DNA of 62,944 nucleotides, filler included, from Pelomyxa schiedti (lineage: Eukaryota; Protista; Evosea), in the NCBI GenBank assembly GCA_020536535.1. It is 7 parts of 7 records of this genome, joined end to end, with 100 filler letters (N's around TTAATTAATTAA, not from the genome) between each part and the next. Parts side by side here need not be neighbours in the genome. Positions count along the whole stretch, not along the records: positions 22,397 to 48,507 come from JAHLWZ010000760.1; 6 more parts are not named here. One strand, 5' to 3'. Numbering within the stretch: the stretch's first letter is position 1; the number at the start of each line of letters is the position of its first letter. Under the pieces are notes generated by a model. The model saw nothing but the letters and a program-made list of their open reading frames with translations. It ran no database searches and was not told the origin of the DNA. A program made the translations under genes and the position numbers. Positions 22,297-48,507 of the stretch are shown one piece after another.

Positions 22297-22706
22297 NNNN
22301 NNNNNNNNNNNNNNNNNNNNNNNNNNNNNNNNNNNNNNNNTTAATTAATTAANNNNNNNNNNNNNNNNNNNNNNNNNNNNNNNNNNNNNNNNNNNNGCAC
22401 TTGTGGGAGGCCGAAAAACAAAGGAAACTTACCAGCATCGCGTGGGTCGCTTCCTTTTTGTTTCTTACGAAAACGGTGATCACTTTTCCACCTACTGAGA
22501 AATCTTCAAATTGGAGATTGAGGTGGAAGGGTGCTGTCCCACAAACCTCTTTTTGGTTACTCTCTATTGAATACAAGAGATTGAGCTAAGGACATCGATA
22601 TTGTGTCTGACTTTTTCGTTCCAAGACCAAAGGACACCAGATCATCATCAAAACACACGAGAGACAACGAGAACAACGTATCGTTGTTCTTCGCTTGTGG
22701 GATTTA

Positions 22707-27882: not shown

Positions 27883-30506
27883 ATGGCAACAACGCGTGGT
27901 GTTGTTGAGTTTGTTGCGAACGCGAAGTTGTCTAGCGGTGTGTACACAGGTCGGCTGGTCAACAACAAACGCGACGGCAGGGGCAAGATGACGTTTCAGG
28001 AGCGGCTCAGCTCCTACGACGGCGATTGGAGGGACAACATGATGCACGGCCGAGGGGTTGTGACGACACCCGAAGGTACGTACGATGGCGAGTTCCGAGA
28101 CAACGACGTGGATGGGTGGGGTGTGTTCCGATTCACAGGCGAGGCATGTTGGGGTGAGGGCGTGTGGCGTCGGGGTACACTCACGAGGGGAACGCGGCAC
28201 GACTCAAACGGGGTCGACGTGAAGGAGGGCGAGTGGGCTGTGAATGAAGCGACAAAGCGCATGATACAACAAGGGTGGGGCGTGTGGAGGAAGAGGATGA
28301 TGATCAACCGTGATGGTGGGCACTACACGGAAGCTACTGCTGCCGCCAAGCTGAACGCGCAAGCTGTGATGGTGACTGTGTATGAGGGCGAGTGGAACAA
28401 CGACCAGAGGCACGGGCACGGGATGTGGAGGTCACCGGAAACAGGCACGATCTACTGTGGTGAGTGGGACCACGATGTGATGAGCGGAACAGGGAGGATG
28501 CTCATTGGTGACAACAGCCGCTACAAAGACCCAGGAGGGAGCTACGTGGGTGGCATGAAGGATGGAGAGTTCCATGGGGAGGGTGTGAGGTTGTTGTCAA
28601 ACGGCGACAGGTATCAGGGACACTGGGAGCATGACAAGGAGCACGGGAACGGGACGAAGAGGTGGGCCAGGGATGGGTCATCGTTCACTGGTGTGTGGGA
28701 GAGGGGTGTCCCTGTCAAGGGAACAATGGAGTGGCCAAACGGTGACATGTTCACTGGCACATTCACAGACGAAACAGTTGGAGAGGGTGTCATGTCACTC
28801 TCACAATTGCACAGCAACGATAGAGAGAGGTCAGCCGAGCTTGGGAACAACAAAATAAAGGGGAGCCTGAGAGGCAACACATTCCACGGAGCTGATGGTG
28901 CCGCCTTGCACGTGATGGGATCGTCACTGCCACACTTGTATCACAGTCAACTCCTCAAGGTGTTCACTCCTCTATCCCTCTAAAACAGACATAACAGAAG
29001 AGTAAAAAAAAACCCAGAAAGTGCAAGAGGAACACAACAACGAGTGGGAAACTGAAAGAAATAAATGGAACATGGAAAGGGCACGGCTTCAGACCAAGTT
29101 GAATGCAGCAGAACTGTCGATCAAGGTGTGCAGCCACCTGGGTTCTTCCTCATAACAATAAAAAATAGGAATTGACCAAACAAAGAGCACTGGAAGAAGA
29201 TGATTCATTACCATTTCTTGTGGTTCACGACACTTCAACTGTTGGAGCAAGCCAGCAGCAACACGAGCCATCACGGGCACTGTCTGAACTTAGCACAGCA
29301 TTCAAGTTTGCCACCAAGTTACGATCGCAGTTGAAAAACGCAGCCCCATTGTTGATTTCAATGGAGGAGTCCGTTTCTGAACTGAAGCGGTCCCTTGAAA
29401 GTGCCACAGAAAGGAACCAGGCCCTTGATATTCACTTGAGGGGACTGGCAAATCTGAGGGAAGCACTTGAAAAGGCAGTTGAGGAGTCAGACACAAGGTG
29501 TACGGAGATTCTCGGCCAAACACTGACAGTGGAGACCAGCGAGTCAGAGATACAGCAGTGCTCCAGGAACATCTCATCATTGATGAAGAAGCTTCTGGTA
29601 ATCAAGCCATGTAACAATGCAGATCAACAAGGACGAGAACTTCCATCCAAAGGTAAATTTCAGTGATAAAACGACACACCCACACACACACAGATATCAA
29701 CAAGTTGATTACTCTCAAACCGTGGTTGAATGTCAAAACTCTGGAACATTCTCCACCATCTTCCTCAGCAGCAGAGCCATTCACAACATTACTGAGAGAG
29801 ATCACTGAAACGTCTTTGACTTTCCTGACACAAGGGGGATGCCTCAAGTTTGACAACTGCAACAATGTCTCTGAGCAGCACACAGTGTTGCACAAGGAGT
29901 GCCGATCACAGGCAACACTGGGTCAGGAACTCCACAAGGAAATCGAGGACCTCCTTGCAACGTGCCAGGGGCTCAATGAGGCATACAAACGCAAGTACAT
30001 GGTGATGCGTGGTCTTGAGGGTGACGAGCAGTTCATGTCGCACCCTGATGTGTGGTCTCAGCTCTCTGAGTTGCTCCCTCGTTCACTTCAGTCGTTGATG
30101 GATGTAACGTTGTCCAAGTGCTCATCCTCATCGACAATAACGCAACAATCACAGCCTCTCCCTCCTTCTACAGCAACAAAAACGCAGCAGCCAGGATGCA
30201 CGCAGGGCTCTGGAATCTTCACAACAACAGCAACCACAACTGGTGAGCCCACCAGCAACCAAGTGACCAACAACACTGGTCTGATGAGCAGCACGATCAG
30301 CATAGAGTGCATTGTGTGTGATGAGAGGCCACGCAGTGTCAGGTTCCACCCTTGTGGCCATGGTGTCTGCTGCTCTGAGGTACTGTAACAATAACAAAAA
30401 GCAAACACAACTAATCGACAACACAAAAACGTAGTGTGCGTCAAATGTGAGGAAGTGCCCGTTCTGTCGTTCTCTGATCCAACAGAAACAAAAGTTGTTC
30501 CTCTGA
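27883..30506 (+). CDS. MORN-repeat - coiled-coil - RING (C3HC4) protein, putative E3 ligase
   Basis: Many YxGxW..HGxG MORN repeats and a heptad region. RING CIVCDERPRSVRFHPCGHGVCCSE|CASNVRKCPFCR spans a GT-AG intron. Stop at 30504-30506. Confidence 0.85.
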
Positions 30507-30549
30507 AACAAAAAAAATTGCTTGAGAAGTGTCCTGTGTACTTCCACCA

Positions 30550-31331
30550 AGTTGAGAACGCGAAGTTGGCTGTCGGTGTGTACACAGGTCGGATGGTCAA
30601 CAACAAACGAGACGGCAGGGGCAAGTTCACGTGGCAGAAAAAGGACGGGCAGCACACCTACGACGGCGACTGGAGGGTCAAACTGGTGCACGGCCGAGGG
30701 ACTTACACTGGCCAGACGGTGGGACGTACGACGGCGAGTGGAGCGACGGCATCAGGGACGGGTGGGGTGTGGAGTGCCTCGCAGGTGGGGGGCAGACTCA
30801 CGAGGGGAACGTGGCGCGACCCAAACGGGGTCGACGTGAAGGAGGGCGAGTGGGTTTGGAATGAGTCCACGAACTCCTACAAACTACAAGGGTGGGGCGT
30901 GTGGAGGAAGGGGATGATCGACTTGGGTTCGGGTACCTACACTGAAGCAACAGGATCTGCTGCTGCCAAGCGTGATTTCTTGTGGTGAACGACACTTCAA
31001 CTGTTGAAGCAAGCCAACACCAACACGAGCCATCACAGGCACTGTCTGAACTGAACACAACATTCAAGGTTGCCACCAAGTTACGATCACAGTTGAAAAA
31101 CGCAGCACCTTTGTTGGTCTCACTTGAGGAGTCAGTCTCATCACTGAAGCAGTCCCTTGAAAGTGCCACAGAAAGGAACCAGGAACTGGCCGTTCACTTG
31201 AGCGAACTGGCAAATCTGAGAGAGGCACTCGACAAGGCAGTTGAGGAGTCTGAAACAAGGTGCAAGGAAATTCTTGGGCAAACATTGACAGTGGAGAGCA
31301 GTGCGTCCGAGATACGGCAGTGCTCCAGAAG
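30550..31331 (+). pseudogene. Degenerate MORN-RING paralog (5' part), frameshifted, internally deleted, cut by the transposon
   Basis: DNA similarity to 27915-28350 fused to the 29210-29570-like region. Homology ends at the CATAAC TIR. Confidence 0.8.
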
Positions 31332-32280
31332 CATAACTGGCGCACGGTGGCGCACTTTGAACCACAGGAAAATTGCTCTGTAAAACACAAAGTGCGCCGA
31401 TTTTCGCACATCTGCGCCAGTGTACCACTGGCGCACTTCAGGTCACGTGAAAAGTCCTCTTCCAAAACACAAAGTGCACCGCGGCGCACTTCGCGACAAG
31501 TAATTTGGTGATTCGTGCCGATGAAAAGGGTCATCGTTATTGGCCCCCCAGCAACCGTTTGGCACAAAAACCACCAGACTGGAGACCCCTTTGCACAACA
31601 CACCCAACCACACCACTCACTGCGCGGTGTGACCACACAGCAGCAAGAACCACATCGATTTTTTTTTGGATACAAAATCAATTTTTTGATGGGTCTTGTT
31701 CTCGGTCTGGTGTTGGTTCCCACTGTTGGCAGTGGTGTCATTGTACGCCCCATAACAATGGGTACATATTCCCGTTGTCGGTGTGTTGTTCGGTTGCTGT
31801 GGGAGGGAGAACCAGCCCTCTTCCCAAATTCGGCTCAGTTCACTTTCACAGAAAACAATCTACTCTTGATTGGTTTCGTTCTCCCTCTGGTGTTCGTTCC
31901 CATTGTTGCCAGTAGTACGGCTCTGTACCTCATGACAAGAGGTACATAGTTCCGGTGTTTTTGCGGTGTTTGGTTGATATTGTATGGAGAACCAGCCTTA
32001 GCAATGTTCCTCCAATCTGCTGATCTCTCATTCGTTCTCCCTCTGGTGTTGGTTCCCACTGTTGCTTGTAGTGCGGTTCTGCACCCCATAACAAGGGGTA
32101 CATAGTACCCTTGTTGTTGCGGTGTTTGGTTGATGTGGGATGGAGAACCAGTCTTAGCAATTTTCCCATAAACTTGATGGGCTGGATTCAGGGAATCTCG
32201 TTTGTGGGACAACTAACTAATCATGGCCCTCTTCAGTGAGTTCATGAACAGATACCCTTTCTGTACTCCACAAGTGGAAA
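31332..32280 (+). mobile_element. Truncated left arm of a TIR DNA transposon
   Basis: Starts CATAACTGGCGCACGGTGGCGCACTTTG and is a close copy of 33486-~34530. Confidence 0.75.
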
Positions 32281-33483
32281 CTTGAACACAGCATTCAAGG
32301 TTGCCACCAAGTTACGATCGCAGTTGAAAAACGCAGCACCTTTGTTGGTCTCACTTGAGGAGTCAGTCTCATCACTGAAGAAGTCCCTTGAAAGTGCCAC
32401 TGAAACGAACCAAGCACTTGCTGTTCACTTGAGCGAACTGGCAAATCTGAGGGAGGCACTTGAAAAGGCAGTTGAGGAGTCTGAAACAAGGTGCAAGGAG
32501 ATACTTGGGCAAAAACTGACAGTGGAGAGCAGTGAGTCAGAGATACGGCAGTGCTCCAGAAATATTTCATTGTTGATGCAAAAACTTCTTGGAATCAAAC
32601 CGTCATCATCATCAATCAATGAAGAACAACGAGGCACAATACCAGTCCAAGGTAAGCATCATACAATTCTTCAACTGCTCCAACGATGCACACAGACATC
32701 AACAAGTTGATGACTCTCAAACCATGGTTGCAGTTGCAAACCTTGTTGGAACAATATCCACCCTCCTCCTCTTCTTCATTGGAGCCTTTATCGCTGCTGG
32801 TGAGAGAGATCACACATACGTTTGACAGCTGTAGCAAGGTCATCGAGCAGCACACACTGTTCCAGAAGGAGTGTGATTCACAATTCACCCTGTGTCAAGG
32901 TCTCCATGATGAAATCGGGGAGCTCTTTGCAGCATGCCAGGGCCTCAACGAGGGATACTCACGCAAGTACATGGTGATGCGTGGTCTTGAGGGTGACGAG
33001 AGTTTCATGTCGCACCCTGATGTGTGGCATCAGCTCTCCGAGTTGCTGCCTCGTGCACAACAGGTGGTCATGGATATCACATTGGCAAAGTTCACGTCAG
33101 GGAAAGTGCCACCAGGTTCCCAGCAGCAGGCTGGGTGCACTGCTTCTGGCTCTGCCTCCATCCCACCGAGAAGCACAACAGAAACGGCAACAAACAGCAG
33201 CATTCACCCACAACCACAAAAGCAAGGAGGGATCAACATCACAACACTGATTGCATCGTGTGCGATGAGAGGCCACGCAACGTCATGTTCCATCCATGTG
33301 GCCACACTGTCTGCTGTTCTGAGGTATTTACCGCCACCATCACAACCCACACAACAGTCATCACCAAAACTAACTGTGGTGCCACCAACAACAACACCAC
33401 GACAACAACACAAACAGTGCTCATCGAACGTGAGGAAGTGCCCATTCTGCCGTGCTCAAATCCAGCACAAGTTGGTCCTCTGA
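32281..33483 (+). pseudogene. MORN-RING paralog, 3' half (coiled coil + RING), frameshift before the RING
   Basis: Homologous to 29290-30506 including introns. The RING (DCIVCDERPRNVMFHPCGH..KCPFCR) is out of frame with the upstream exon. Confidence 0.78.
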
Positions 33484-33485
33484 TC

Positions 33486-36400
33486 CATAACTGGCGCACG
33501 GTGGCGCACTTTGAACCACAGGAAAATTGCTCTGTAAAACACAAAGTGCGCCGACCATTTTTTGGGTCGGCGCAGTTTCGAACTGCGCCCGGCGCACTTT
33601 GTGTTTTTTTTTTCCGAGAAATCGAAACCCAAAGTGCGCCGATTTTCGCACATCTGCGCCAGTGTACCACTGGCGCACTTCGGGTCACGTGAAAAGTCCT
33701 CTTCCAAAACACAAAGTGCGCCGCGGCGCACTTGTCGACAAGTAATTTGGTGATTCGTGCCGATGAGAAGGGTCGTCGTTCTTGGCCCCACAGCAACCGT
33801 TTGGCACAAAAACCACCAGACTGGAGACCCCTTTGCACAACACACGCAACCACATCACTCACTGCGCGGTGTGACCACACAACAGCAAGAACCACATCGA
33901 TTTTTTTTTGGATAAAAATCGATTTTTTGATGGGTCTTGTTCTCGGTCTGGTGTTGGTTCCCACTGTTGGCAGTGGTGTCATTGTACGCCCCATAACAAT
34001 GGGTACATATTCCCGTTGTCGGTGTGTTGTTCGGTTGCTGTGGGAGGGAGAACCAGCCCTCTTCCCAAATTCAGTTCACATTCACAGAAAACATATCTAA
34101 TCTGATTGGCTTCGTTCTCCCTCTGGTGTTGGTTCCCATGGTTGCCAGTAGTACGGCTCTGTACCTCATAACAAGAGGTACATAGTTCCGTTGTTTTTGC
34201 AGTGTTTGGTTGATATTGTATGGAGAACCAGTCTTAGAAATGTTCCTGCAATTCACTGATCTGTCTGTTGATCTCTCCATTCGTTCTCCCTCTTGTTGCT
34301 TATAGTGCGGTTCTGTACCCCATAACAAGGGGGACATAGCACCGTTGTTGTTGCGGTGTTTGGTTGCTGTTGGATTGAGATTATGGGCCGACGGAATCAG
34401 GGAATCTTGGCTTGATGACTGAGTGCCAAGTTGGACAACTATTTCTGGCCATTCAGGAACCAGCGAGTTCATTCTAACAGATACCAGTGAACTCACCCTT
34501 TGTGTTCTCCACAAAGTATACGAACTTGGATTACTGAGGACTGAGTGGAATCTTATATTGTCAAAAAACAAACAAGGATGTTATCTTTGTGTCTTCGTTA
34601 TCTCAGGCAGTTTAGGGGTAGATTCTGCGGTAATAATCTAAGGTCAAGGTCAGTGCTCTGCACAGCTGGATGCACGAATACAGCAATAGGAACGTGGCAC
34701 ACAGTTTAACATGTTTGATTACATCCACACTTGAGAATTGATTTGAACATCACAGCCTTTTAACCCAACCCCACAAACTCTTAATTCTCTCACTCCATTT
34801 GGTTTCTTCCTCTGTGGTACTGTTAGCTTCTGTGGGCTCGAGAATAAGTCCCACAGAGGAAGAAAACGAGTGAGAGTGAAGAGAATAAAGAGTGTTCTCT
34901 TGTTTGTTTGGTCGTTGTTGTTGTAAGAGGGTAAAAAGGGAGTGTGTAAAATCTCGCAGAGCGGTTGTGCGATTGGGTTAAAAGGCTGCGATGTTCAAAT
35001 GGATTCTCGGACAAGTGTGCATGTGATCAAAACCGCCTGCCGCGTTCTTATTGCTGTATTTGTGCGCCCAGCTGCGCTGTGCGCTGATCATTACATTCGC
35101 TGTCTCATTCTGGTAATAGTCCAGATTCGGCTCAGTCCTCAGTCTCTCCAATCCCGCAAAAGCGCGCCAGACTTCAGAGCCTCGCGAGCAAGGCCGAGTT
35201 CGTGTACTTTGTGGAAGTACACAGTACTTATTCTCAAGCCCACAGAATCTACCCTTAAACTGCCTGAGATAACGAATCACACACGAATCCTTAAACCACA
35301 CATCTTGTGTTTCAACAGGTATTACACAACCTTGAGCTCAACCTTCAGGGACTCAGCAGTACACACAAGGATCTGAGGTGCACTTGAGGGAATTTCTGGA
35401 ATAAGGGAGTGTCAACTCAGGACACACTGGCAGAACTCATCAGGCTTGAAGTTGTTGTTTCCCTGCCTGCGTTCTCAACGTGGCCTCAAAGCTCACCACA
35501 CCAACCAAATACTTATTCATGATTTGCTCTCTGGGCGACTTCCATTCTGTTCCTTAGAACGTAAAACTTGATTACAGAGCCCAACTCCAATTGTGGGAAG
35601 TGTTGGTTCCCACTGAGACTCACAGTGGCCACCCTGGGCAGTTAGAATCCACCAAACACAGCCTGGTTAACTTGTGGCGCACCTTGGACCACAGGGTTTT
35701 GACTGGAACACAAAGTGCGCCACTTGGGTTCCTAGTGGCGCACTTCGTACACTGTATTGTACAGCAGGATTTTCCATTCCTCGGCGCACTTTGTGTTGGA
35801 GTGGAAAAAAATTCACTCAAACTGTGTGTCTATTGCAGGGAACTGAAGGTTCTCTTGTGCTTTACCTCACAGGAACCCAAGCTTACACTGTCCACACTGA
35901 GCTCAGTGAAATCAGAAATCAAACAGATCCAGAGTATTAACAACCACCCTATTTCCTCCAGAAACACCCCAACAGCAGGAAACAGTGGGACAGGTTACCC
36001 CTTTGTTCCAAGGCATGACGCACACATCATTGCCAACAGTTGAGAAAGACACAATTGAGGGTGATGGGTCTGTGTTGTGTCATGTCTGCAATTTCTGCTC
36101 CCTGCTGGGATACCTCCATGGCATAGATAGGGATGGATGGGATCTGGAATCAGTGGCATCACCAATTGACACGGAGAGTGAACGACAATCAGCAGCACTC
36201 ACAAGTTCACGTTTCCCGGCATCGGCATTGAGAAAACACAAAGTGCGCCCCTCGGCGCACTTTGGGACCGACGGTTGACATGACACAAAGTGCGCCAAGT
36301 GGCACCATGGCGCACTTTGTGTCATGTCGTTGGCCCAGTCAAAAAACACAAAGTGCGCCGGTCGGTCGGCGCACTTTGTGTTCGTGGTGGTAGAGTGTTG

Positions 36401-36988: not shown

Positions 36989-39795
36989 TTACGTCTGTGC
37001 TATCTTGACAGTGTTGTGGTTGTAAATGTTTACAGCAGGATACAAACCCAGTGGGACGTTGTTCACTGTTGCAGTTGCGTTGTTGTGTCGTGGCCATGTT
37101 GCAGTGAGCGTGAGTGTGCGTGCGTCATACCAGAACATAACATCCTCACTGCCCCCGCTGGCTCTGAACGTGGGTGTGCTGCCTGGGAAACGCCAGGAGT
37201 CATTGTTTGTGCTCCAGCCATACATACTGTACGGATCCACTGCGTTTTGGTTCACCGGCCTCTGAATGAGTCCATAGGAAACCCAGTGGTATCCATCTGC
37301 TTCCTTGAGGTCAGAGATTGAGAATTGCCACTCATACACGCGGTCAGGATCAGAGAGCTGTGTGGTGGCTGTCACTGTCGATTGTCGGTGTTGGTGGGGG
37401 CTGGATACTGGCTTGTGCACGATTGACTTGTCATTTGGTGGGATCACAAGGAGGTTACCGCAGCACCCTGTGTCCCACTCCCATGTTGTTGTATCTATTT
37501 TGGTGAGGAAGTGATTGATGGGTTGAACAACAAACGGCAACACACCAAAAAGCAGAGTGGATGAAACATGTTGACCGGCAACTGTGAGAGTCAATGTTGC
37601 TTGGTCGTAATTGTTGTCTCGGGCTTGTGGTGGTGGCACTGTGCACATGATTACAGTGTGTGGGTGTGTCACCTCTATGTTGAAGCACATTAGTCCTGTG
37701 TGTTTTTGGAATCAGATAATCAGATGAAGATAAATGGAGTGTATCACACCATTGACACACACTGTTATTTCATGGGGTGAGGTTCCAAACCCACGACCTG
37801 TGATTGTTACCCTCTCACCTTGTCGATGAACCCTTGTGACGTTCTGAATCTCCGGTCCTGTGTGTGCCTGTTGTGAGATTTTTCTTGAGGTTGAAAAGCA
37901 CAACAAACCTGGGAATGAGAACCTCGTGTCATTTGGCCTGTGAGCAGGAGCCCCAAACACAGAGAGTGACACAGGGAGGTCACATCCAACACCACAATCT
38001 GGCAAAGTGAAAGTGAGAACCGAGCCAGGAGTGACAATGTTCACGTTTGTGCACTCGGATTCACCAACTCGCACTTGAATGTCTTGGTTCTTTGCCGACG
38101 GTGCCCACTGTCCACACAGTGTCACTGAACGTACTCCTGTTACTCTGGCGTCGGCTGTTGTTTCCTCCTTGATGCATTCAAGCACTGGTCCTGTGTTTTT
38201 ATCAGATAATAAGCGGGGGAAATGAAGCAACCAACCAGTTGAGATGTAACAGAGGCCAGGAATCATTGATTTGAAGGGTTCAATGTCATCAGTGCGACAA
38301 CTCAAATTTGCACTGACACAGGGTGTCAAGTTCTCCGGTTTGCATTCAACTTGCTGTTTTCCTTTGCGTAAGAGCGTGGGGATGTGTCCCGCAAGTTAGG
38401 TTGTTGAAATAACAATTACCCTCAGGATGACAGTGAGCGAATCACAAGATTCGATGATTTTAAAGGGATCACCAGTCTTCAGGATTGATTCAAACTTGGA
38501 TTTGAAATTCTCAACGTGCATCACTCCCGCTGTGATGCTCTCAAGTTGCTTTGACAACTCACATGCTGTTTTTAAAAACAAATGTCAAAAAAAAAAAAAA
38601 AAAAGTGAAAGGGAAAGAGAACTAGTGGACACGCACTCTTGGAGGATGCAATTGACCTTGACAACGAAAGCAGTTCCTCTTGTCTTCTTTGCAATCTTGA
38701 AATCATCTCACTGAATTCCCAGCTGACTTTTTCCTCAAACTCACTGTGAACCTTGTTGTTTTTGAATTGGTTGAAAGAAAGAAATACATGCATTCAAAAA
38801 AACCTGTTTCACATTTGAGATCACTGGCTCAATGGACTTTGCACTCAAGCTCAAATCTGTTTGCAATTTGGTGAGTTTCTGCACAAAGGCCTCAACACTC
38901 GATTTCTTGGTGCTGCACAAATCTTCCACAGTCGAAATGTTGTGCCCCTTCAATGCGAAATCAGCAAAATGAGCGAAGGTAGGAACAAACAAACCTTGTG
39001 GGAAGATGAGAACGAGCATGTCGGGCAAATGAATGTGCCATCACTCTCACAGAACAAGTCCAGTTGAAGCCGGTGCTTCTCACACATCATCCTTCCTGTT
39101 TGTTCATCAGATAAATAAAAAACAAGTGAGAGAGGGGTTGGATTGCCTTCGGGTGCCGGATCCACGACAGCAGACACAGGGTCACATTTCACATGTGACA
39201 CCGAACCAGGAGCCCAGTGTAAGTTGGACCAACAAGATTCACAGAAAAACATTGGGGAACCCCCGCCCAGTGTCCTCGTGCACTCCTTGCACCAGTACTT
39301 GGCACTCACTCCCATAACTCCCATCGCTGTGCACTTGCTGCAACTCATCACGACGCCACCGCCACTGGTGGCCCTGTTCGCTGCGAATTTGGCTGCTGCA
39401 TCTGCCGATGGTGGTGATTTGTTGGGGGGCGTCAGTTCGCGCACTGTGGCGTCCCTTGTGGCCCCGCACACGCCGCACCACACTCGCAACGCGGCTGCCG
39501 ACGTCGGCGAGTTGCGGTCCCCATCCCCAGGAACACCGCCGCCGCCGCCGGTTGCCGCACCCTGACGCGAAATGGAGGATTGTGGGATGTCCCTCGAGAA
39601 CGTGACGATTGCTTCGCTGCAATCGCCACACACCACGTGGCCACACCCTGGCTCAACAACAACATGGTGACCACCACCACCACGCTCCGACGACGACACG
39701 TTGGGTTGTTCGATTATGGGATCCCTGCACACACTGCATCGTCTTTGTTGTTGTTGGTGTGTTGATGGTGGTGCGGCGGTTGTCACCCCTGCCAT
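36989..39795 (-). CDS. TRIM-like protein A: RING-Bbox1-Bbox2-coiled coil-IPT-IPT-PRY/SPRY
   Basis: RING CSVC..CGHVVCGDC..CGVC. B-box1 CSKC..CKEC..CESC..H..H. B-box2 CEKH..LFCESD..ICPTC..HKGH. Heptad exons. IPT VTITGRGFG. SPRY WD..YEW..YGL..YGW..YD..LYPAV. Confidence 0.82.
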
Positions 39796-39966
39796 TGAAG
39801 CAACAATTTTATGTGAAAATCAGGAATTCATCAGTCGAAGTAAAAGAATCCCTGTTCTCTGGTTGTAAATACTGGGCACACCACTTGGTACTTTGTTCAC
39901 TGTTGCACTTTGCAACTGTGGGAGACGATAGTGAAGTAGTTTCTGAGCCTCAGAAACCGGAAAAAA

Positions 39967-41415
39967 ATGTTTGATGGTGCCGGTGACGCACTGGAGCGGT
40001 ACACCACAGCCAAATCGCAAGTCCTGGCCATGCTATGTTCTGCAGTTGGGTCGTTGAGTGCCCATAACTTTAGCACACAAAACAAAACTGATGTAGAAGT
40101 GACGATACTTACAAACAAAAAAACAAAATACAGACACACACGCAGTGGCAGCAGTGACGACGAAAGTGGCGACAACGAAGACGACGTCCACATGGACGCG
40201 TGGAGGCCGACAACGCATCCCGTCCCATCATTGATTTCTTGGGTGCGCTCAGCTGATTTGTTCAGGGAGTGGGCTGAGAACTGGGTTCTGAGGCCTGACC
40301 AAGAGGCCGTGTTCTTGCCATTGAAGCACTCGCCTCAGGGATGTGGCTCCGTGACTGCGTGGTACTTGTATGTCAGTGTGTCACCAACACTGGGTGTCAT
40401 TGACCACTTCTGGAACCACTGTGACCGCAAGAACAGGGTGTGTGGGTGCGTGGGGCACAACAGGCTGCTGGTCTCCACCCCGAGTACAGAGAATGATTGT
40501 GTGGATTACTACATTGAGCATGCTTCACCTGGGAGTACCACTCCCTCGCAGTTTGTGTGGTCACTGGAAGGTTGTGCTGCTGCTGTGGACATTCCTGTGG
40601 CGAAGTGCAACACAAAGTGGATTGTGATATACGCTGGGCTGTATGAGCAGCTTCATGTGTGGAGGGTGGTTGGTGGAAGTGCTGTTGGAACAAGGGTGGT
40701 GCTGAGTACCAATTGTGATTTGCTCAAGGTCAACAAGCCTGATGGTTCAAAGCTCAAATATGCAACACTTGAGTTCTGCCTATTACATGACAATACCCTG
40801 ATGATATATACATCTTATAAGCCCCCAGAGAATCCAATTGAGTCTGACAAGCAAGGCAACCCACCCAGACAAGCCCCTTTGAGCAGAGCTACCTTTGTTG
40901 ATTTGGAGGAAAGCCACAGGGAAAACCACTTTGTTTTTTCATCAAAGCCCCTTGACTTTGATGATCCCTTTACAGCAGCAGTGATGAGAAATCCAGGTGG
41001 TACCCTGAACTATACTTTACACTATACCTCGCAGTGGATGACACAGTGCTCTTTCTACTTGAAACATGGCACTACCTCCCAGAAGTCACCACGGTTCCCA
41101 CAGGGGTCCCAAGTCAGCCAAATTGGCCCTATGCACCTGGTTGTTTTCTGTCCTGTGTCTGCACACAAAGATACCCTGTTTAGTGTTTACAACATAGAAA
41201 ATGACATGACTTCCCTCTGTGTTCCCTGCACTTGGGCCTCACCCAGCATCCAGCAACCATCAAGCCTTATTCTAGCAACAAGTTACCATCAACCATTTCC
41301 TTCAGAACCTACAGAAATGCATCTATCACTGCACGAGGGTGTCACTGGTGTGTGCCTTGGAATGTTCTCTTTTGTGGTGAACCCTGATTTTTTTCTCTCC
41401 ATGGACTTGGTGTAA
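39967..41415 (+). CDS. 'ARAQFVALACG' family member 4 (divergent, complete, 482 aa)
   Basis: AKSQVLAMLC, ENWVL, VSVSPTLGV, CNTKWIV, HVWRV and TFVDL match the family motifs. Confidence 0.75.
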   Translation: MFDGAGDALERYTTAKSQVLAMLCSAVGSLSAHNFSTQNKTDVEVTILTNKKTKYRHTRSGSSDDESGDNEDDVHMDAWRPTTHPVPSLISWVRSADLFREWAENWVLRPDQEAVFLPLKHSPQGCGSVTAWYLYVSVSPTLGVIDHFWNHCDRKNRVCGCVGHNRLLVSTPSTENDCVDYYIEHASPGSTTPSQFVWSLEGCAAAVDIPVAKCNTKWIVIYAGLYEQLHVWRVVGGSAVGTRVVLSTNCDLLKVNKPDGSKLKYATLEFCLLHDNTLMIYTSYKPPENPIESDKQGNPPRQAPLSRATFVDLEESHRENHFVFSSKPLDFDDPFTAAVMRNPGGTLNYTLHYTSQWMTQCSFYLKHGTTSQKSPRFPQGSQVSQIGPMHLVVFCPVSAHKDTLFSVYNIENDMTSLCVPCTWASPSIQQPSSLILATSYHQPFPSEPTEMHLSLHEGVTGVCLGMFSFVVNPDFFLSMDLV

Positions 41416-41478
41416 AATTTGCACATTAAACACAAACACAAAACCACATAAAAATCTGGTTACAAAGGATTTTTTTGT

Positions 41479-41862
41479 ATCACAACCAATGCCGAGCTCG
41501 GAAGTGGGTTTTGGACTGTGGCCCTCGCAGTGGCATCGAATTGGGGTGCCCTAACTTGTCAAATGCTTGTAACAGAAAGCGCTTCCCGAGGGTGAAAGCA
41601 CCCAAATTGTCTGAGTTTGCCAGTAAAATGTGGGCCTTGAACAAAAGTGTGCATACAGTTCTGTGCGTCTCTGTGTGAGGATTACAGCTCACAGCATTTC
41701 AGGGCAGACATCGGCACTGTCCAGGAGTTATAATCAAGGAAAGGAAACAAAAAAGGAAATTTGCACCATTCTCCCCCAGTGCCACTTCATCACAACCAAT
41801 GCCGAGCTCGGAAGTGGGTTTTGGACTGTGGCCCTCGCAGTGGCATCGAATTGGGGTGCCCT
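41479..41862. repeat. 74-bp exact direct repeat (41479-41552 and 41789-41862)
   Basis: ATCACAACCAATGCCGAGCTCGG...GGGGTGCCCT occurs twice, 310 bp apart. Confidence 0.9.
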
Positions 41863-41959
41863 GCTTTTGTTTTTTGAACTCCACCCAAAAGTGGCTCCCT
41901 GTGGTCACACACTTTTGGGTGGTTTCCTTTCTATTGACAAAAACACTTTTTTTAATTTT

Positions 41960-44900
41960 TTAGCTGCTCTCAATGCCAGTTATCTTGACAGTGTTGTGGT
42001 CGTACACTTCAACAGCTGGGTAGAGACCCCTTGGGATGTTGTTTACTGTTGCTGTTGTGTTGCCATGTAGTGGCCACTGTGCACTGAGTGTGAGTGTGTG
42101 TGCATTGTATCTTAGTGTAACTTCCTCTGTCCCACCAGTGGCTTTGAACCCCAGTGTGCCTGAAGGTAGCCTGTAGCATGGTTTGGCTGTTGACCAGCAG
42201 TACATGTCAGAGTACAGAGAGAGGTTGTGGTCAACAGGCTTCTGAATGACCCCATATGCAACCCACTGGTCTCCCTTTAGGCCAGAGATTGATAGGTGCC
42301 ACTCATACATGTGGTCACCAACTAGCTGTGTTGTAGCTGCAACTATTGATTGTGCATTTTGTGTCCGGCTGGATGTTGGCTTGTGAACTGTTGACTTGTC
42401 ATCTGACTGGATCACAAGGAGGTTTCCACAGCACTCAGTGTCCCACTCCCATGTCTCTGTTGCAGTGTGAGGTTTGAAACTTAGTTGAAGTTTCATACCA
42501 AAAGATACAGTGGATGATGCATGTTGACCAGCAACTGTCAGAGTCATCATGGCTTGTTTTGTGTTGGCATGTGGTGGTCGTGGCACTGTGCATGTGATGC
42601 AAGTGTGGGGCTGTGAAACTTCAACGTTTGTGCACAGAGCACCTGACTTCCATCAATTGTAAAAGCACCAAACACAACACATACCATTGACAGAAACAGT
42701 AATTACACTTGGTGAGGTACCAAATCCATTCCCTGTGATTGTGATCTTCCCTCCAAATTGGGGAGCCTTGGATACACTCCGAATCTCCGGTCCTATTTGG
42801 GTGATGACTCAGTTGCAGAAAGAAAGGGTTTAAGACACAGCAAACCTGGGAAAGAGAACCTGGTGTCATTTGGCCTGTCGGCTTGGATTCCAAACACAGA
42901 GAGTGAAACAGGGAGGTCATGGCCAATTCCTCCAAAGGGAGGCATGAAGGTAAGAACCGAGCCAGTAGAGACAATGTTGATGTTTGTGCACTCAGATTCA
43001 CCAACTCGCACTCTAATGTCTTGGTTCATTGCAGTTGGTGACCACCACCCACACAATGTGATATTTACAGAACCTCCACCTTTTGCACCTGTGGGTTGCA
43101 CTTCCTCCTTGGTGCATGCCAGTACTGGTCCTAAAAGTTGTTGGTTGAAAGTATTTACAAAGGACACTGGAGAAAAGACAAACTAGGTGAAATGAAACAC
43201 AGGCCAGGAATTTTCGACTTGAAGGGTTCAATGTCATTAGCAGAGGTAACAGTTGTACCGGTACAGGGTGACAAGTGTTCAGGTTTGCATACAAGTTGCT
43301 GTGTGATTTTAATGCTAAGCAGATTAAACAACAAGGAAAATACCTTGAGGATTCCAGGAATGGATTCACACAACTCAAGGATCTTGCCACCATCACAGAT
43401 TCTCAAAGTGGATGAACACTTTGACTTATACTTGTCAATGTGCTCGAGTGCCACAGAAAGAATTTCTAGTTGCTTTGACAAGGCACCAACTGTGGTGATA
43501 GGTGTGTATTAAAACAAAAAGAGTGATTCTCAGAACACACACTTTTAGAGGATGCTATTGCCCCAGAGGTTGAAAGTAGTTCCTCCTGTCTTCTTTGTAA
43601 TTGTGCAATCATGTCACTGAATTCCCTGTTGATAGTTTCATCAAACTGGCTCTGAACCTTTGTGCTTCTGGTTAAGGGTTTGTTGGAAGTGGGGAAGGAG
43701 AACCAGCTTGATTTTTTCTGTCTCAGATTTGATTGAAACAGCCAACAAATTCAGATCCACTTCCAGTTTTGACAGTTGTCCAAAGAACGCCTTTGGGCTT
43801 GGTTGATTTCTAAGAGTCAAGTCTTCAACTGAGACAACATGATGTCCCTTGTTCCGAGTCAGATTCGATTAAATTAGTGCTGATGATAACCTTGTGGGAG
43901 GAATGGAAGACACATCTTGAGCAAATAAATGTACTGTCGGTTACACAGAATACATCAAGTGGAAGCTGATGACTTTCACACATCCTCACACCTGTGTAAA
44001 GGATGTCGTGTTAGTATTGGAATGACCTGTGTGTCTGTGTCTTGTAATGTTTTAACATAAGAAAAGAAAGATTACAACCTGTAGACTCAGCCACAACAAC
44101 GGTAGGAGCAGAAAGAGGATCAGACTTGGCATGAGACCTCATGCAGGGTGCCCAATGAGCCTTTGACCAGCACGGTTCACAGTACAGCATCTTTTCTCCT
44201 CCAGAGGATGCCTTTGTGCACTCCCTGCACATGAACCTGGCAGCGACCTCAGCGTGCCCAGATGCCTGGCACATCATGCAAACCGCAACAGCAGAAGCAG
44301 AAGCGGAAGCAGCAGAGGAAGAAGAAGAAGAAGGTGCAGAAGCAGATACAGAAGCAACTGTTCTCCTCCTCTTTGGGGTTGTTGGTGCTGGCGTGCCGCT
44401 CTCTGCCGATGTGTCTCCTCCTTCTCTTTCTTCCTCGTCATTGTTTGCTACAACTACGTCCATCACAGCAGGGTCCGGTTCTGGTGGCTCCAGTTGCCGT
44501 ATCGTCGCGCTCCTTGTGCACCCGCACACGGGGCACCACAGCTCGATGGCTTCACCTGGCGTCTCCACCACAACGCCACCGGTGCTCAGACCACCCGCAC
44601 CCTCTGTTGTCAACGACGGATACAACACCGACGACGAAGAGGAGGCGCTGGAGGAGGAGGAAGAGGAGGGGGAGGGGGAGGGGCAAGGAGCGGGGATCGT
44701 TGGGGGTGGGGGTGATGACGAAGAGGAGGGGGAGGAGGAGGAGGAGGAGGAGGAGTACCTTGGGAAGTCCCTCGAGAAAGTGATTACGGCGTCGCTGCAG
44801 GCGCGGCACACGGGGTGCCCGCACGACGGGGCGAGGCGGCCCACCGGCGACAACGGACCTCGCGAGGCGGAGGCGGTCCCCTCCCCCTCTGGCGGCGAAG

Positions 44901-45045
44901 GGGAGGCCGAGGCGGAGGGAGGGGTACCCCCGACGGGCGGGGGCGGCGGGGGCACAGCGGCCGGGACGAGGAGGAGGGGATCCAGGCACACGGAGCAACG
45001 GATTGTGTTGTTGTGTGCGCCCCTGCTTGTTGTGAGCCCCGCCAT
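41960..45045 (-). CDS. TRIM-like protein B (most divergent complete copy)
   Basis: Same domain order and similar intron positions. RING CSVC..CGHPVCRAC..CPVC carries long Ser/Pro inserts. B-box2 CESH..VFCVTD..ICSRC..HKGH. Confidence 0.82.
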
Positions 45046-45085
45046 TCGTCTGTGGCTGGATAATTGATTTATGCTAAGAAACGGG

Positions 45086-48000
45086 TTACACCGATGCTAT
45101 CTTGACAGTGTTGTGGTTGTAAATGATCACAGCAGGATACAAGCCCCTTGGGACGTTGTTCACCGTTGCGGTTGCGTTGTTGTGTCGCGGCCACGTTGCA
45201 GTGAGCGTGAGTGTGCGTGCGTCATACCGGAACATAACATCCTCAGTGCCCCCGCTGGCTCTGAACTTGGGTGTGCTGCCTGGTATACTCCAGGAGCCAT
45301 TGTCTGTGCTCCAGCCATACATGAGGTGATCGCTTTTGTCCAACGGCCTCTGAATGAGTCCGTAGGCAACCCAGTGGTATCCCTCCTCGAGGTCAGAGAT
45401 TGAGAGGCGCCACTCATACACGCGGTCAGGATCAGAGAGCTGTGTGGTGGCTGTCACTGTTGATTGTGGGTATTGTTGGGGGCTGGATACTGGCTTGTGC
45501 ACGATTGACTTGTCATTTGGTGGGATCACAAGGAGGTTACCGCAGCACCCTGTGCTCCACTCCCATGTTGTTGTATCTAGTTTGGTGAGGAAGTGATTGA
45601 TGGGTGAACAACAAATGGAAACACACCAAAAAGCGGAAGAGTGGATGAAACATGTTGACCGGCAACTGTGAGAGTCAATGTTGCTTGGTTGGAGTTGTTG
45701 TCTCGGGGCTGTGGTGGCACTGTGCACGTGATGACGGTGTGTGGGTGCGTCACCTCTACGTTGAGGCACTTGACTCCTGTGTTTTGGAATCAGATAATCA
45801 GATGAAGATAAATGAGTGTAACACACCATTGACACACACTGTTATTTCACGGGGTGAGGTTCCAAACCCACGACCTGTGATTGTTACCCTCCCACCTTGT
45901 TGACGACCCCTTGTGATGTTCTGAATCTCTGGTCCTGTGTGTGCCTGTTGTGAGATTTTTCTTGAGGTTGAAAAGAACAACAAACCTGGGAATGAGAACC
46001 TCGTGTCATTTGGCCTGTGAGCAGGAGTCCCAAGCACAGAGAGGAACACAGGGAGGTCACATCCAACACCACAATCTGGCAACGTGAAAGTGAGAACCGA
46101 GCCAGGAGTGACAATGTTCACGTTTGCGCACTCGGATTCACCAACTCGCACTTGAATGTCTTGGTTCTTTGCCGGCAGTGCCCAGTGTCCACACAGGGTA
46201 ACCGAACGTTCTCCTGTTCCTCTGGCGTCTGCTGTTGTTTCCTTCTTGATGCATTCAAGCACTGGTCCTGTGTTTTTTATTCAGAACAGCGAGTTGGGGG
46301 AAGTGAAGCAACCAACCAGTTGAGATGTAACAGAGGCCAGGAATCTTTGATTTGAAGGGTTCAATGTCATCAGTGCAACAACTCAAAGTTGCACTGACAC
46401 AGGGTGTCAAGTGCTCCGGTTTGCATTCAATTTGCTGTTTTCCTTTGCGTAAGAGTGTGGGAATGTGTCCCGCAAGTTAGGAGATTGAAATAACAATTAC
46501 CTTCAGGATTACACCAACTAAGTCACAAGATTCGATGATTTTAAAGGGATCATCAGTCTTCAGAATTGCCTCAAACTTGGATTTGAAATTCTCAATGTGC
46601 ATCACTCCCGCTGTGATGCTCTCAAGTTGCTTTGACAACTCACATGCTGTTTTTAAAAACAAATGTCAAAAAAAAAAAAAGTGAAAGAGAAAGACTGTCG
46701 ACACACACTCTTGGAGGATGCAATTGACCTTGACAAAGAAAGCAGTTCCTCTTGTCTTCTTTGCAATCTTGAAATTATCTCATTGAATTCCCGGCTCACT
46801 TTTTCTTCAAACTCACTGTGAACCTTGTTGTTTTTGAATTGGTTGAAAGAAAGAAATACATGCATTCAAAAAAACCTGTTTCACATTCGAGATCACCGGC
46901 TCAATGGACTTTGCACTCAAGCTCAAATCCATTTGCAATTTGGTGAGTTTCTGCACAAAGGCCTCAACACTCGATTTCTTGGTGCTGCACAAGTCTTCCA
47001 CAGTCGAAATGTTGTGCCCCTTCAATGCGAAATCAGCAAAATGAGCGAAGGTAGGAACAAACAAACCTTGTGGGAAGATGAGAACGAGCATGTCGGGCAA
47101 ATGAATGTGCCATCACTCTCACAGAACAAGTCCAGTTGAAGCCGGTGCTTCTCACACATCATCCTTCCTGTTTGTTCATCAGATTACAACACAAATGAGA
47201 GAAGGATTGGATTACGTTCGGGTGCCGGATCCGCCACAGCAGACACTGGGTCACATTTCACATGTGCCGCCAACCCAGGAGCCCAATGAGTGTTGGACCA
47301 ACAAGATTCGCAGAAAAACATCAGGGAACTCCCTCCAAATATCTTCGTGCACTCCCTGCACCAGTACTTGGCACTCACTCCCATAACTCCCATCGCTGTG
47401 CACTTGCTGCAACTGGTGCTGCTGTTCGCTGTGTGTTTGGTTGTTGCATCTGCCGATGATGGTGGTGATTCGTTGTGCGGGGGCGTCAGTTGGCGCACTG
47501 TGGCGTCCCTTGTGGCCCCGCACACGCCGCACCACACTCGCAACGCGGCTGCCGACGTCGGCGAGTTGCGGTCCCCATCCCCAGGACCGCCGCCGCCTGT
47601 GCCACTTCCACGTTTTGTGGCCGAACCCCCCCGCGAGGCAGAGGATTGTGGGATGTCCCTCGAGAACGTGACGATGGCTTCGCTGCAATCGCCACACACC
47701 ACGTGCCCACACCCTGGCTCAACAACAACATGGTGACCGCCACGACCACCACGACACGCCGNNNNNNNNNNNNNNNNNNNNNNNNNNNNNNNNNNNNNNN
47801 NNNNNNNNNNNNNNNNNNNNNNNNNNNNNNNNNNNNNNNNNNNNNNNNNNNNNNNNNNNNNGAGGATTGTGGGATGTCCCTCGAGAACGTGACGATGGCT
47901 TCGCTGCAATCGCCACACACCACGTGCCCACACCCTGGCTCAACAACAACATGGTGACCGCCACGACCACCACGACACGCCGACGACGACACGTTGGGTT

Positions 48001-48106
48001 GTTCGGTTATGGGATCCCTGCACACACTGCATCGTCTTTGTTGTTGTTGTGTTGGTGGTGGTGGTGCCAACACAGCAGATGCAACACCCGTTGTCACCCC
48101 TGCCAT
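45086..48106 (-). CDS. TRIM-like protein C (close paralog of A)
   Basis: Highly similar to A including introns. The N gap at 47762-47861 has duplicated flanks. Confidence 0.82.
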
Positions 48107-48156
48107 CGAAAGGACACCACAATTTTACGTTAAAATCAATATTTTGTTTTTTTTCA

Positions 48157-48507
48157 TCAGTCGACGTCAATCATCCCTGTTATTTTGACAGTGTTGTGGT
48201 TGTGAATACTTACAGCGGGATACAGGCCACTTGGCACGTTGTTCACTGTTGCGCTCCTCAACTGGAGTCCCTGCGCTGTCCACGTCGCAGAGAGCGAGAG
48301 TGCTCGCGGGTCATACCTCAGTGTAACTTCCTCACTGCCGCCCGTGGCCTGGAACGCGGGTGTGGTCAGTGGTAGCCTCATGTGCTTGCCGTCCGTTGTC
48401 CAGCCGTAAATGTCCCTGTACTGCAGTTCGCTGTTGTCAAGCGGCCTCGGCATCACTCCGTAGGACACGAGCTTGTCTTGGTGCTCTCCCTTGAGCCCGG
48501 AGATTGA
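48157..48507 (-). CDS. TRIM-like protein D, SPRY C-terminus only (contig end)
   Basis: ISGLKGEHQDKLVSYGVMPRP..YGWTTD..YDPRALSLSATW..LYPAVSIHNHNTVKI. Confidence 0.72.
   Translation of the reverse strand, partial: SISGLKGEHQDKLVSYGVMPRPLDNSELQYRDIYGWTTDGKHMRLPLTTPAFQATGGSEEVTLRYDPRALSLSATWTAQGLQLRSATVNNVPSGLYPAVSIHNHNTVKITGMIDVD

Follow-up and report, generated by a model that had tools for sequence, protein, structure and literature searches.

Predicted TRIM-like genes with IPT/TIG and SPRY domains form a tandem family in the archamoeba Pelomyxa schiedti

Can a single-celled amoeba possess its own expanded family of tripartite-motif (TRIM) proteins, with a RING, two B-boxes and a coiled coil at the front and a SPRY domain at the end? 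To our knowledge, SPRY-headed TRIM ligases are a mainstay of animal cell-autonomous immunity and have long been regarded as an animal invention. The question is raised by a tandem array of genes in Pelomyxa schiedti, a free-living anaerobic archamoeba (Archamoebae, Amoebozoa). The array lies on contig JAHLWZ010000760.1 (26,111 base pairs (bp); assembly GCA_020536535.1), which occupies positions 22,397 to 48,507 of the window, i.e. the whole 62,944-nucleotide stretch of DNA that was analysed and along which positions are counted here. It appears that the array belongs to a lineage-restricted, tandem-expanded TRIM-like family whose members are probably RING E3 ligases that work as dimers and recognise targets through a diversifying SPRY head. 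In this reading, we infer dimerisation, ligase activity, target recognition by the SPRY domain and expression of the genes.

An initial annotation had described the locus as a tandem array of at least four same-strand TRIM-like genes in a protist-like genome, with the domain order RING, B-box1, B-box2, coiled coil, IPT, IPT and PRY/SPRY. The count was borne out when exon peptides of gene A were searched with tblastn against the 26,111-bp contig: three full copies (A, B and C) and one partial copy (D) were found, all on the minus strand, and no further copy. The source is also as described, because the contig is that of Pelomyxa schiedti and not of a metazoan. The genes and their exons are as follows.

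36989-39795, minus strand: gene A, complete, 10 exons, 772 codons, stop codon at 36989-36991
39795-39147, 39095-38995, 38947-38804, 38751-38637, 38565-38420, minus strand: exons 1-5 of gene A
38353-38236, 38190-37909, 37857-37750, 37695-37546, 37494-36992, minus strand: exons 6-10 of gene A
41960-45045, minus strand: gene B, complete with 874 codons in 10 exons, a diverged paralogue
45045-44076, 43991-43891, 43847-43704, 43657-43543, 43489-43344, minus strand: exons 1-5 of gene B
43298-43184, 43130-42846, 42792-42685, 42642-42499, 42456-41963, minus strand: exons 6-10 of gene B
45086-48106, minus strand: gene C, 10 exons, 774 codons, complete after collapse of an assembly gap
48106-47216 (contains the gap), 47167-47067, 47019-46876, 46823-46709, 46646-46501, minus strand: exons 1-5 of gene C
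46434-46317, 46267-45986, 45934-45827, 45776-45627, 45576-45089, minus strand: exons 6-10 of gene C
48157-48507, minus strand: gene D, the final 116 codons of a SPRY exon and the stop codon, cut by the contig end

Genes A and C are ~93% identical in DNA, introns included, and B is far more diverged. In the SPRY domain, identity to gene A is 59% for gene B and 50% for gene D. The stop-to-start spacers are very short, 50 nucleotides (nt) between D and C and 40 nt between C and B. Immediately upstream of the start of gene A (39881-39918, minus strand) is a short putative relic that resembles a SPRY exon's 3' end; the evidence, a 38-nt blastn match of 84% to the end of gene D, is weak. Its position relative to the start of A mirrors the position of the D end relative to the start of C, which suggests that the duplicated unit may have begun inside a SPRY exon.

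What ties these genes to TRIMs? The evidence comes from the middle of the protein, where three features of gene A are of interest.

38942-39084, minus strand: B-box2, split by intron 2 (38948-38994), C-x2-H-x7-C-x7-C-x2-C-x5-H-x2-H
38420-38941, minus strand: coiled coil, the remainder of exon 3 with exons 4 and 5
38236-38353, minus strand: linker from the coiled coil to the first IPT domain (IPT1), exon 6, conserved among paralogues and matched by no Pfam family

Window genes were searched exon by exon, and deposited spliced paralogues (P0001, P0016 and others) served as proxies for whole-protein questions. The B-box2 has canonical ligand spacing and spans the junction of exons 2 and 3. In gene A it scores 26.8 bits against Pfam zf-B_box (cut-off 24.1), and among eight scanned paralogues six reach 28-54 bits. 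From 12 family members, a profile covering B-box2 and the coiled coil was built and searched against the PDB. The best matches were TRIM3 (expectation value (E) 4.9e-13) and TRIM28 (E 2.4e-12), followed by TRIM29, TRIM72, TRIM5, TRIM41, TRIM39, MID1/2 and TRIM21. In fact, the top 27 PDB matches were all TRIM-family proteins, i.e. proteins with RING plus B-box plus coiled coil (RBCC). The TRIM3 and TRIM28 alignments run in register through B-box2 and ~100-150 coiled-coil positions. A full-length profile found one match outside Pelomyxa, a RING-B-box-filamin-NHL protein, to which hhalign aligned 197 columns with a probability of 95.7% and E 9e-9. This alignment passes through the linker and ends at the start of the partner's Ig-like domain. 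Identity to animal TRIMs is ~20%, and Pfam TRIM_CC scores 15-17 bits in the paralogues against a cut-off of 30. Because the alignments with TRIM3, TRIM28 and the filamin-NHL protein are in register, the core of B-box2 and coiled coil appears clearly homologous to that of animal TRIMs and not convergent. The proposal that the architecture was convergently built thus fails for the core, where B-box2, coiled coil and linker all align.

Does the coiled coil pair in the manner of animal TRIMs? An ESMFold2 homodimer of B-box2 and coiled coil of a close paralogue (P0001:64-250) scored 0.59, and the best of three controls scored 0.00. Contact agreement among the runs was at least 96% with a partner predicted local distance difference test score (pLDDT) of at least 85, and the contact pairs sum to ~326, which describes an antiparallel arrangement about residue 163. 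Of proteins solved as pairs of one chain, 21 of 30 pass the mark for a dimer, against none of 23 solved as single chains; for eukaryotes the figure is 17 of 29 overall and one of the seven that have no older solved relative. It weakens the case for a dimer that the pass may reflect solved TRIM coiled coils already known to the model. The prediction is best taken as a likeness to TRIM coiled coils, not as binding.

The C-terminal half of the protein consists of two Ig-like domains and a terminal domain, which are located in gene A as follows.

37909-38190, minus strand: first IPT/TIG domain (IPT1), exon 7
37546-37857, minus strand: second IPT/TIG domain (IPT2), exons 8 and 9, interrupted by intron 8
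36992-37494, minus strand: SPRY domain, the whole of the last exon, 167 codons

IPT1, as encoded by exon 7 of gene B, matches Pfam TIG (PF01833) with 22.3 bits (cut-off 20.9) over profile positions 6-84. Genes A and C have two matched TIG stretches each, with TIG scores of 29.4 bits in A and 30.8 in C. IPT2 scores 21-43 bits in paralogues, and the TIG matches in P0001 score 58 bits (six of the eight scanned, with almost the whole profile covered). By these profile scores, both predicted IPT domains exceed the Pfam gathering cut-off. TIG was the sole match, as Pfam fn3 and Filamin gave none at E<=0.1 in the window exons or in eight paralogues.

The last exon is recognised by its fold. Neither Pfam SPRY (PF00622) nor PRY (PF13765) matched any of the genes' exons here at E<=1 or any of eight paralogues at E<=0.1, and the family's own SPRY profile retrieved nothing from PDB sequences at E<=10. 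An AlphaFold2 model of the last exon, based on a 15-row family alignment, has a pLDDT of 89.4 and a predicted template modelling score of 0.84. (The model input was 36992-37537, so that the first 15 residues are intron-coded and of low pLDDT; the result was unaffected.) Foldseek returned at least 300 PDB matches at E<=1e-3 for this model, and the best 50 listed were all SPRY/B30.2. The closest folds were RanBP9/10 (E ~1e-7), Ash2L and HERC1, with template modelling (TM) scores of 0.6-0.7 and identities of 14-20%. The TRIM9 SPRY fits the model with TM 0.69/0.72 and a root-mean-square deviation (rmsd) of 3.0. SPRY-only structures fit with rmsd 3.0-3.9, and B30.2 structures fit worse, with rmsd 6-7. 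Further evidence comes from a shape search of the ESM Atlas (TM 0.71-0.78): of its ten listed matches, nine have Pfam SPRY and one has zf-TRAF/RING families. On the strength of the model, the C-terminal domain can confidently be predicted to be a SPRY domain, its PRY part not being demonstrable. In other words, the SPRY half of the PRY/SPRY assignment holds and the PRY half does not.

Is there a RING at the front of the protein? Two predicted zinc modules are encoded by exon 1 of gene A.

39466-39738, minus strand: RING-like module, C20-x2-C-x27-C-x-H-x2-C-x2-C-x47-C-x2-C, with long low-complexity loops
39193-39342, minus strand: B-box1-like module, C152-x2-C-x13-C-x2-C-x12-C-x2-C-x4-H-x7-H

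The 16 zinc ligands of the two modules are retained in each of the eight aligned paralogues (~40% identical) that cover them, and the loops between the ligands are hypervariable and of low complexity. Six RING ligand columns are strictly invariant across all eight, and the seven rows that extend to the first C-x2-C pair all retain it. The same strict conservation holds for a tryptophan preceding the last pair and for the hydrophobic residue that separates the first two cysteines. Exon 1 gives an AlphaFold2 model of poor overall quality (pLDDT 54.7), in which a central helix is predicted where RINGs carry one. A RING is likely, though not proven, on the basis of the invariant C3HC4 ligand pattern together with weak matches.

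Several observations weigh against a working RING. The module in gene A scores below the Pfam cut-offs (zf-RING_UBOX 13.4 bits, zf-C3HC4 12.2 bits), and the fold matches to RINGs are weak (Z 3.0-3.4) on a low-confidence model. Its two loops are of unusual length: those of A have 27 and 47 residues, and those of B far more. In many active RINGs the last zinc ligand is immediately followed by a basic residue; such a residue is not evident here, as judged by eye only. Some RING-less or inactive TRIMs serve as scaffolds or adaptors, and the same architecture could likewise have no ligase activity, with a degenerate RING acting as a structural or oligomerisation element. The scores below the cut-offs, the low-confidence N-terminal model with its weak RING fold matches and the very long low-complexity inserts in both RING loops all fit such scaffold or adaptor proteins. 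Nevertheless, this alternative is unlikely: all eight ligands, the hydrophobic residue and the tryptophan have been strictly kept while paralogues diverged to ~40% identity, and the helix is predicted at the RING-typical place. RING ligases thus remain the preferred reading.

The loops of this region differ among copies. In gene B, the RING loops contain long serine/proline-rich inserts. A conserved P-K-R-R-R motif follows an acidic stretch between RING and B-box1 in B (exon 1, 44076-45045), P0016, P0019, P0020, P0021 and P0001, and is absent in A and C. The motif looks like a nuclear localisation signal.

The B-box1 region of gene A is modelled with pLDDT 70-88, and its eight ligands are invariant. 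VIA-align matched it to the B-boxes of CYLD (Z 7.1) and COL2 (Z 6.1, rmsd 1.6), to TRIM28 B-box1 (Z 4.9, rmsd 1.8, 43/43 residues) and to PML B1 (Z 4.0), all below the Z of 8 under which a match is not decisive according to the tool's own note. Foldseek on the N-terminal model gave no match at E<=1e-3, with CYLD and PML B1 listed first among the non-significant ones, and a search of the PDB with the N-terminal profile gave non-significant matches only (CYLD B-box E 0.19). Pfam ANCHR-like_BBOX reached 18-22 bits, below its cut-off, in two paralogues, in one of which the match falls on B-box2. It is the predicted fold that argues for B-box1. Of the domain order as originally proposed, therefore, B-box2, the coiled coil, both IPT domains and SPRY were upheld, the RING has its ligand pattern and weak matches, and B-box1 has its fold.

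Do A, B and C represent intact genes? Their models were made by inspection and by three-way alignment. Each has 10 exons, introns of 42-71 nt, conserved intron phases and zero in-frame stops. Splice sites are all GT-AG with the sole exception of intron 1 of gene A, which is GC-AG; such introns account for 1.59% of introns in P. schiedti according to the genome paper. Intron 9 measures 51 nt in A, 42 nt in B and 50 nt in C. With the length that it has in C, the SPRY exon is in frame only if this intron is spliced, which amounts to a comparative proof. A nine-exon model with a single 704-nt last exon was rejected because it frameshifts gene C, a problem that the ninth intron resolves. The intron 9 junction of A agrees with P0002, the deposited model of A's last two exons (Pelo_9652), and six other junctions recur in deposited spliced paralogues. 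The deposited models are Augustus, PASA and EVM predictions that used transcript data (genome paper). It counts against the spliced models that the four sequencing runs containing this stretch are DNA from one sample, and their contigs are without splice joints.

Judged against these models, the deposited annotation of these genes is wrong: it cuts A short and runs B and C together. The deposit retains of gene A just a 202-residue fragment (36989-37648), and the last exon of A is 100% identical to GenBank KAH3758545.1 (Pelo_9652). It joins B and C (41960-47648) into one product of 1550 residues, a fusion that is probably explained by the intergenic spacers of 40-50 nt. P0001 (1366 residues) and P0006 (leucine-rich repeats plus a TRIM-like part) resemble comparable fusions of neighbouring genes.

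The gap in gene C has the following layout.

47762-47982: assembly artefact in exon 1 of gene C, 100 N (47762-47861) followed by a 121-nt duplicate (47862-47982) of 47641-47761

The two 121-nt stretches are exactly identical, and dropping the 100 N together with one of them leaves exon 1 of C in frame and collinear with A. The assembly was made with SPAdes at k up to 121 and then with a scaffolder based on RNA-seq (genome paper). Because the largest k equals the length of the duplicate, the gap would be an unmerged k-mer overlap and not a lesion. On this evidence the gap in C is an artefact, and it can be closed as a 121-bp overlap. RNA read pairs presumably bridged exon 1 of C.

Are the coding sequences under selection? 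The ratio of nonsynonymous to synonymous substitution rates (dN/dS) was pooled over the 10 pairs that can be formed from five close copies, namely A, C and three on other contigs. SPRY had the highest value, 0.60; the others were 0.21 (B-box2 plus coiled coil), 0.31 (IPT1), 0.32 (IPT2) and 0.33 (linker). The coding sequences thus appear to be under constraint, because dN/dS is below 1 in every pooled domain class and in every A-B exon with unsaturated dS. The SPRY domain is the fastest-evolving part, as expected for a recognition module. Two loop windows within it have dN/dS above 1, and two other loops show indels and high dN. Against diversifying selection on SPRY, however, stands the whole-domain ratio below 1, and the substitutions behind the windows above 1 are few and not independent, so that these windows are suggestive only. 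In the second gene of L004 (9800-12000, P0017), dS relative to the A group is ~1.0 in B-box2 plus coiled coil and 0.14-0.29 in IPT and SPRY. Such mosaic divergence suggests that paralogues have recombined or undergone gene conversion.

One could argue instead that the array is decaying, that some copies are pseudogenes, and that their open frames exist by chance or reflect an assembly artefact of a repeat family. The deposited fragment of A and the B-C fusion, the gap with duplicated flanks in C, the non-canonical GC donor in A, the short relic upstream of A and the fragmentary state of several annotated paralogues are all compatible with decay. However, A, B and C are open over ~770-870 codons in 10 exons whose phases are conserved, indels separating A from C are intronic or multiples of three, dN/dS is 0.2-0.6, and the gap is a k-mer overlap. 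Decay is therefore highly improbable, and intact genes are the preferred reading.

How widely is the family distributed? It comprises ~21 annotated proteins on at least 12 contigs, all from P. schiedti, and DNA runs contain many variants at 90-99% likeness. The claim of a locally expanded family thus holds, given the four copies here and the tandem pairs or triplets on several other contigs. On contig JAHLWZ010000520.1, part of another SPRY exon (L002:5-262) lies just upstream of the P0018 gene, in a head-to-tail array cut by the contig end. A few members were named 'tripartite motif-containing protein 38/41/50' by the depositor's pipeline, and the genome paper makes no mention of TRIM, B-box or SPRY. 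An exhaustive HMMER search with the last exon against 1.84 billion representatives returned 15 matches, all at least 47% identical and none outside the family; all 10 that were looked up are P. schiedti proteins. Word-indexed protein searches, in which proteins of 0.55-1.75 times the query length were considered and 8000 candidates scored, found only P. schiedti and one distant filamin-NHL TRIM. Metagenome scans added no other organism. Feature searches of the ESM Atlas gave no cluster joining TIG with SPRY, at scores below 0.9 that serve as leads only. In ESM Atlas clusters of 58-59 proteins, Pfam SPRY does occur together with zf-B_box, and one such cluster includes a Heterolobosea record, so that B-box plus SPRY proteins may occur in other protists. 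The literature found on TRIM evolution reports, outside animals, only TRIM37-like genes with a MATH domain, including a single one in Dictyostelium (PMC3503706, PMC5758549). In that literature, neither the TRIM-like core with an IPT-IPT-SPRY tail nor its expansion is described outside animals.

This distribution bears on the origin of the genes. Horizontal transfer from an animal, or a contig from a contaminating eukaryote, would account for the fact that, among detectable relatives, animal TRIMs are nearest to the core and that no relative was found in other Amoebozoa in the data searched; moreover, the culture was polyeukaryotic (genome paper). Such an origin is improbable, however. The nine tiny introns (42-71 nt), one of them GC-AG, match the published intron density and boundary statistics of P. 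schiedti. The family is found on at least 12 contigs of a decontaminated single-cell assembly, beside unrelated genes, and the HMMER search of the last exon found nothing outside the family. With ~20% identity to animal TRIMs, any transfer would be old. We therefore prefer to regard the family as P. schiedti's own.

How does the family compare with known TRIM classes? The best sequence matches of its B-box2 and coiled coil are in classes VII/X (TRIM2, TRIM3, TRIM71 and TRIM45), which consist of RBCC, a filamin Ig domain and, in some, NHL. Both groups have an Ig-like beta-sandwich after the coiled coil. However, the Ig-like domains of Pelomyxa are two in number and score as IPT/TIG, not as filamin, and they are followed by a terminal SPRY and no NHL. 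Class I (TRIM9, TRIM67 and MID1/2; RING, B-box1, B-box2, coiled coil, COS, FN3, SPRY) shares B-box2, the predicted B-box1 and a beta-sandwich spacer before SPRY. Furthermore, the TRIM9 SPRY is among the structures closest to the Pelomyxa SPRY, and a TRIM67 cluster is among the language-model look-alikes in the ESM Atlas, as a lead only. Class I differs in having one FN3 where Pelomyxa has two IPT/TIG spacers, and no SPRY similarity was found at the sequence level. Class IV (TRIM5alpha, TRIM21 and fish finTRIM) also forms tandem multi-copy clusters, encodes SPRY in a single last exon and has in SPRY its fastest-evolving part, with variable, indel-bearing loops. Unlike class IV, the Pelomyxa proteins are without a PRY signature and have IPT domains interposed, B30.2 structures fit their SPRY with rmsd 6-7, and positive selection is not demonstrated. 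The TRIM37-like proteins (RBCC plus MATH; PMC3503706, PMC5758549) are similar in being non-animal, amoebozoan proteins of RBCC-like layout. They are encoded by a single gene in Dictyostelium, whereas the Pelomyxa family is multi-copy and has a B-box2 with a predicted B-box1, an IPT-IPT-SPRY tail and no MATH. Finally, RanBP9/RanBP10, Ash2L and HERC1 have the solved folds closest to the Pelomyxa SPRY, but their protein context is unrelated and no sequence match was found at the profile level.

How might these proteins work? In the proposed mechanism, the coiled coil would form an antiparallel homodimer, as in animal TRIMs, and the RING, aided by the B-boxes, would recruit a ubiquitin-loaded E2. 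The SPRY domain, carried on two Ig-like IPT spacers, would bind a target for ubiquitination. The family would have grown by tandem duplication and exchange between copies, and with fast change in SPRY, different copies would probably recognise different targets. P. schiedti is reported to house bacteria and methanogens (PMC10579272). For such an amoeba, a role of the family in immunity or in endosymbiont control is plausible. A bolder version holds that the RBCC-Ig-like-SPRY layout predates animals or arose independently in Archamoebae, and that it was expanded in Pelomyxa into a diversifying intracellular recognition system by which microbes, symbiont vacuoles or viruses are tagged with ubiquitin. 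This version is doubtful at present; if true, it would mean TRIM-based cell-autonomous surveillance outside animals.

The contig carries other features outside the four genes.

27883-33700, plus strand: second tandem family, probable RING E3 genes, three repeated units
31660-32166 and 33901-34400, minus-strand repeated open frames: two blocks of three ~175-nt tandem units each, downstream of the second and third of those repeated units
39967-41415, plus strand: 482-codon open frame between A and B, on the strand opposite to theirs

The units of the second family contain MORN repeats (Pfam 85 bits), a coiled-coil-like stretch and a C-terminal zf-C3HC4_3 RING (25.9 and 30.3 bits, cut-off 27), and as direct repeats they are 72-89% identical. 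The 300 nt just upstream of each ~175-nt-unit block are also duplicated (94% identical), and the open frames in these blocks have similar beginnings. The open frame between A and B, for which the deposit annotates a protein of 454 residues, matches no Pfam family. A tRNA scan of the 26,111-bp contig found none.

What does the array mean for the TRIM family and for its host? If the full RING-B-box1-B-box2-coiled-coil core is present in an archamoeba, complex TRIM architectures would have an older origin than an animal one, or an old transfer would have taken place. The same implication attaches to the IPT-IPT-SPRY tail, the roughly twenty or more copies and the fast-evolving SPRY domain. The family would also offer an experimentally approachable candidate for intracellular cargo recognition in a symbiont-laden amoeba.

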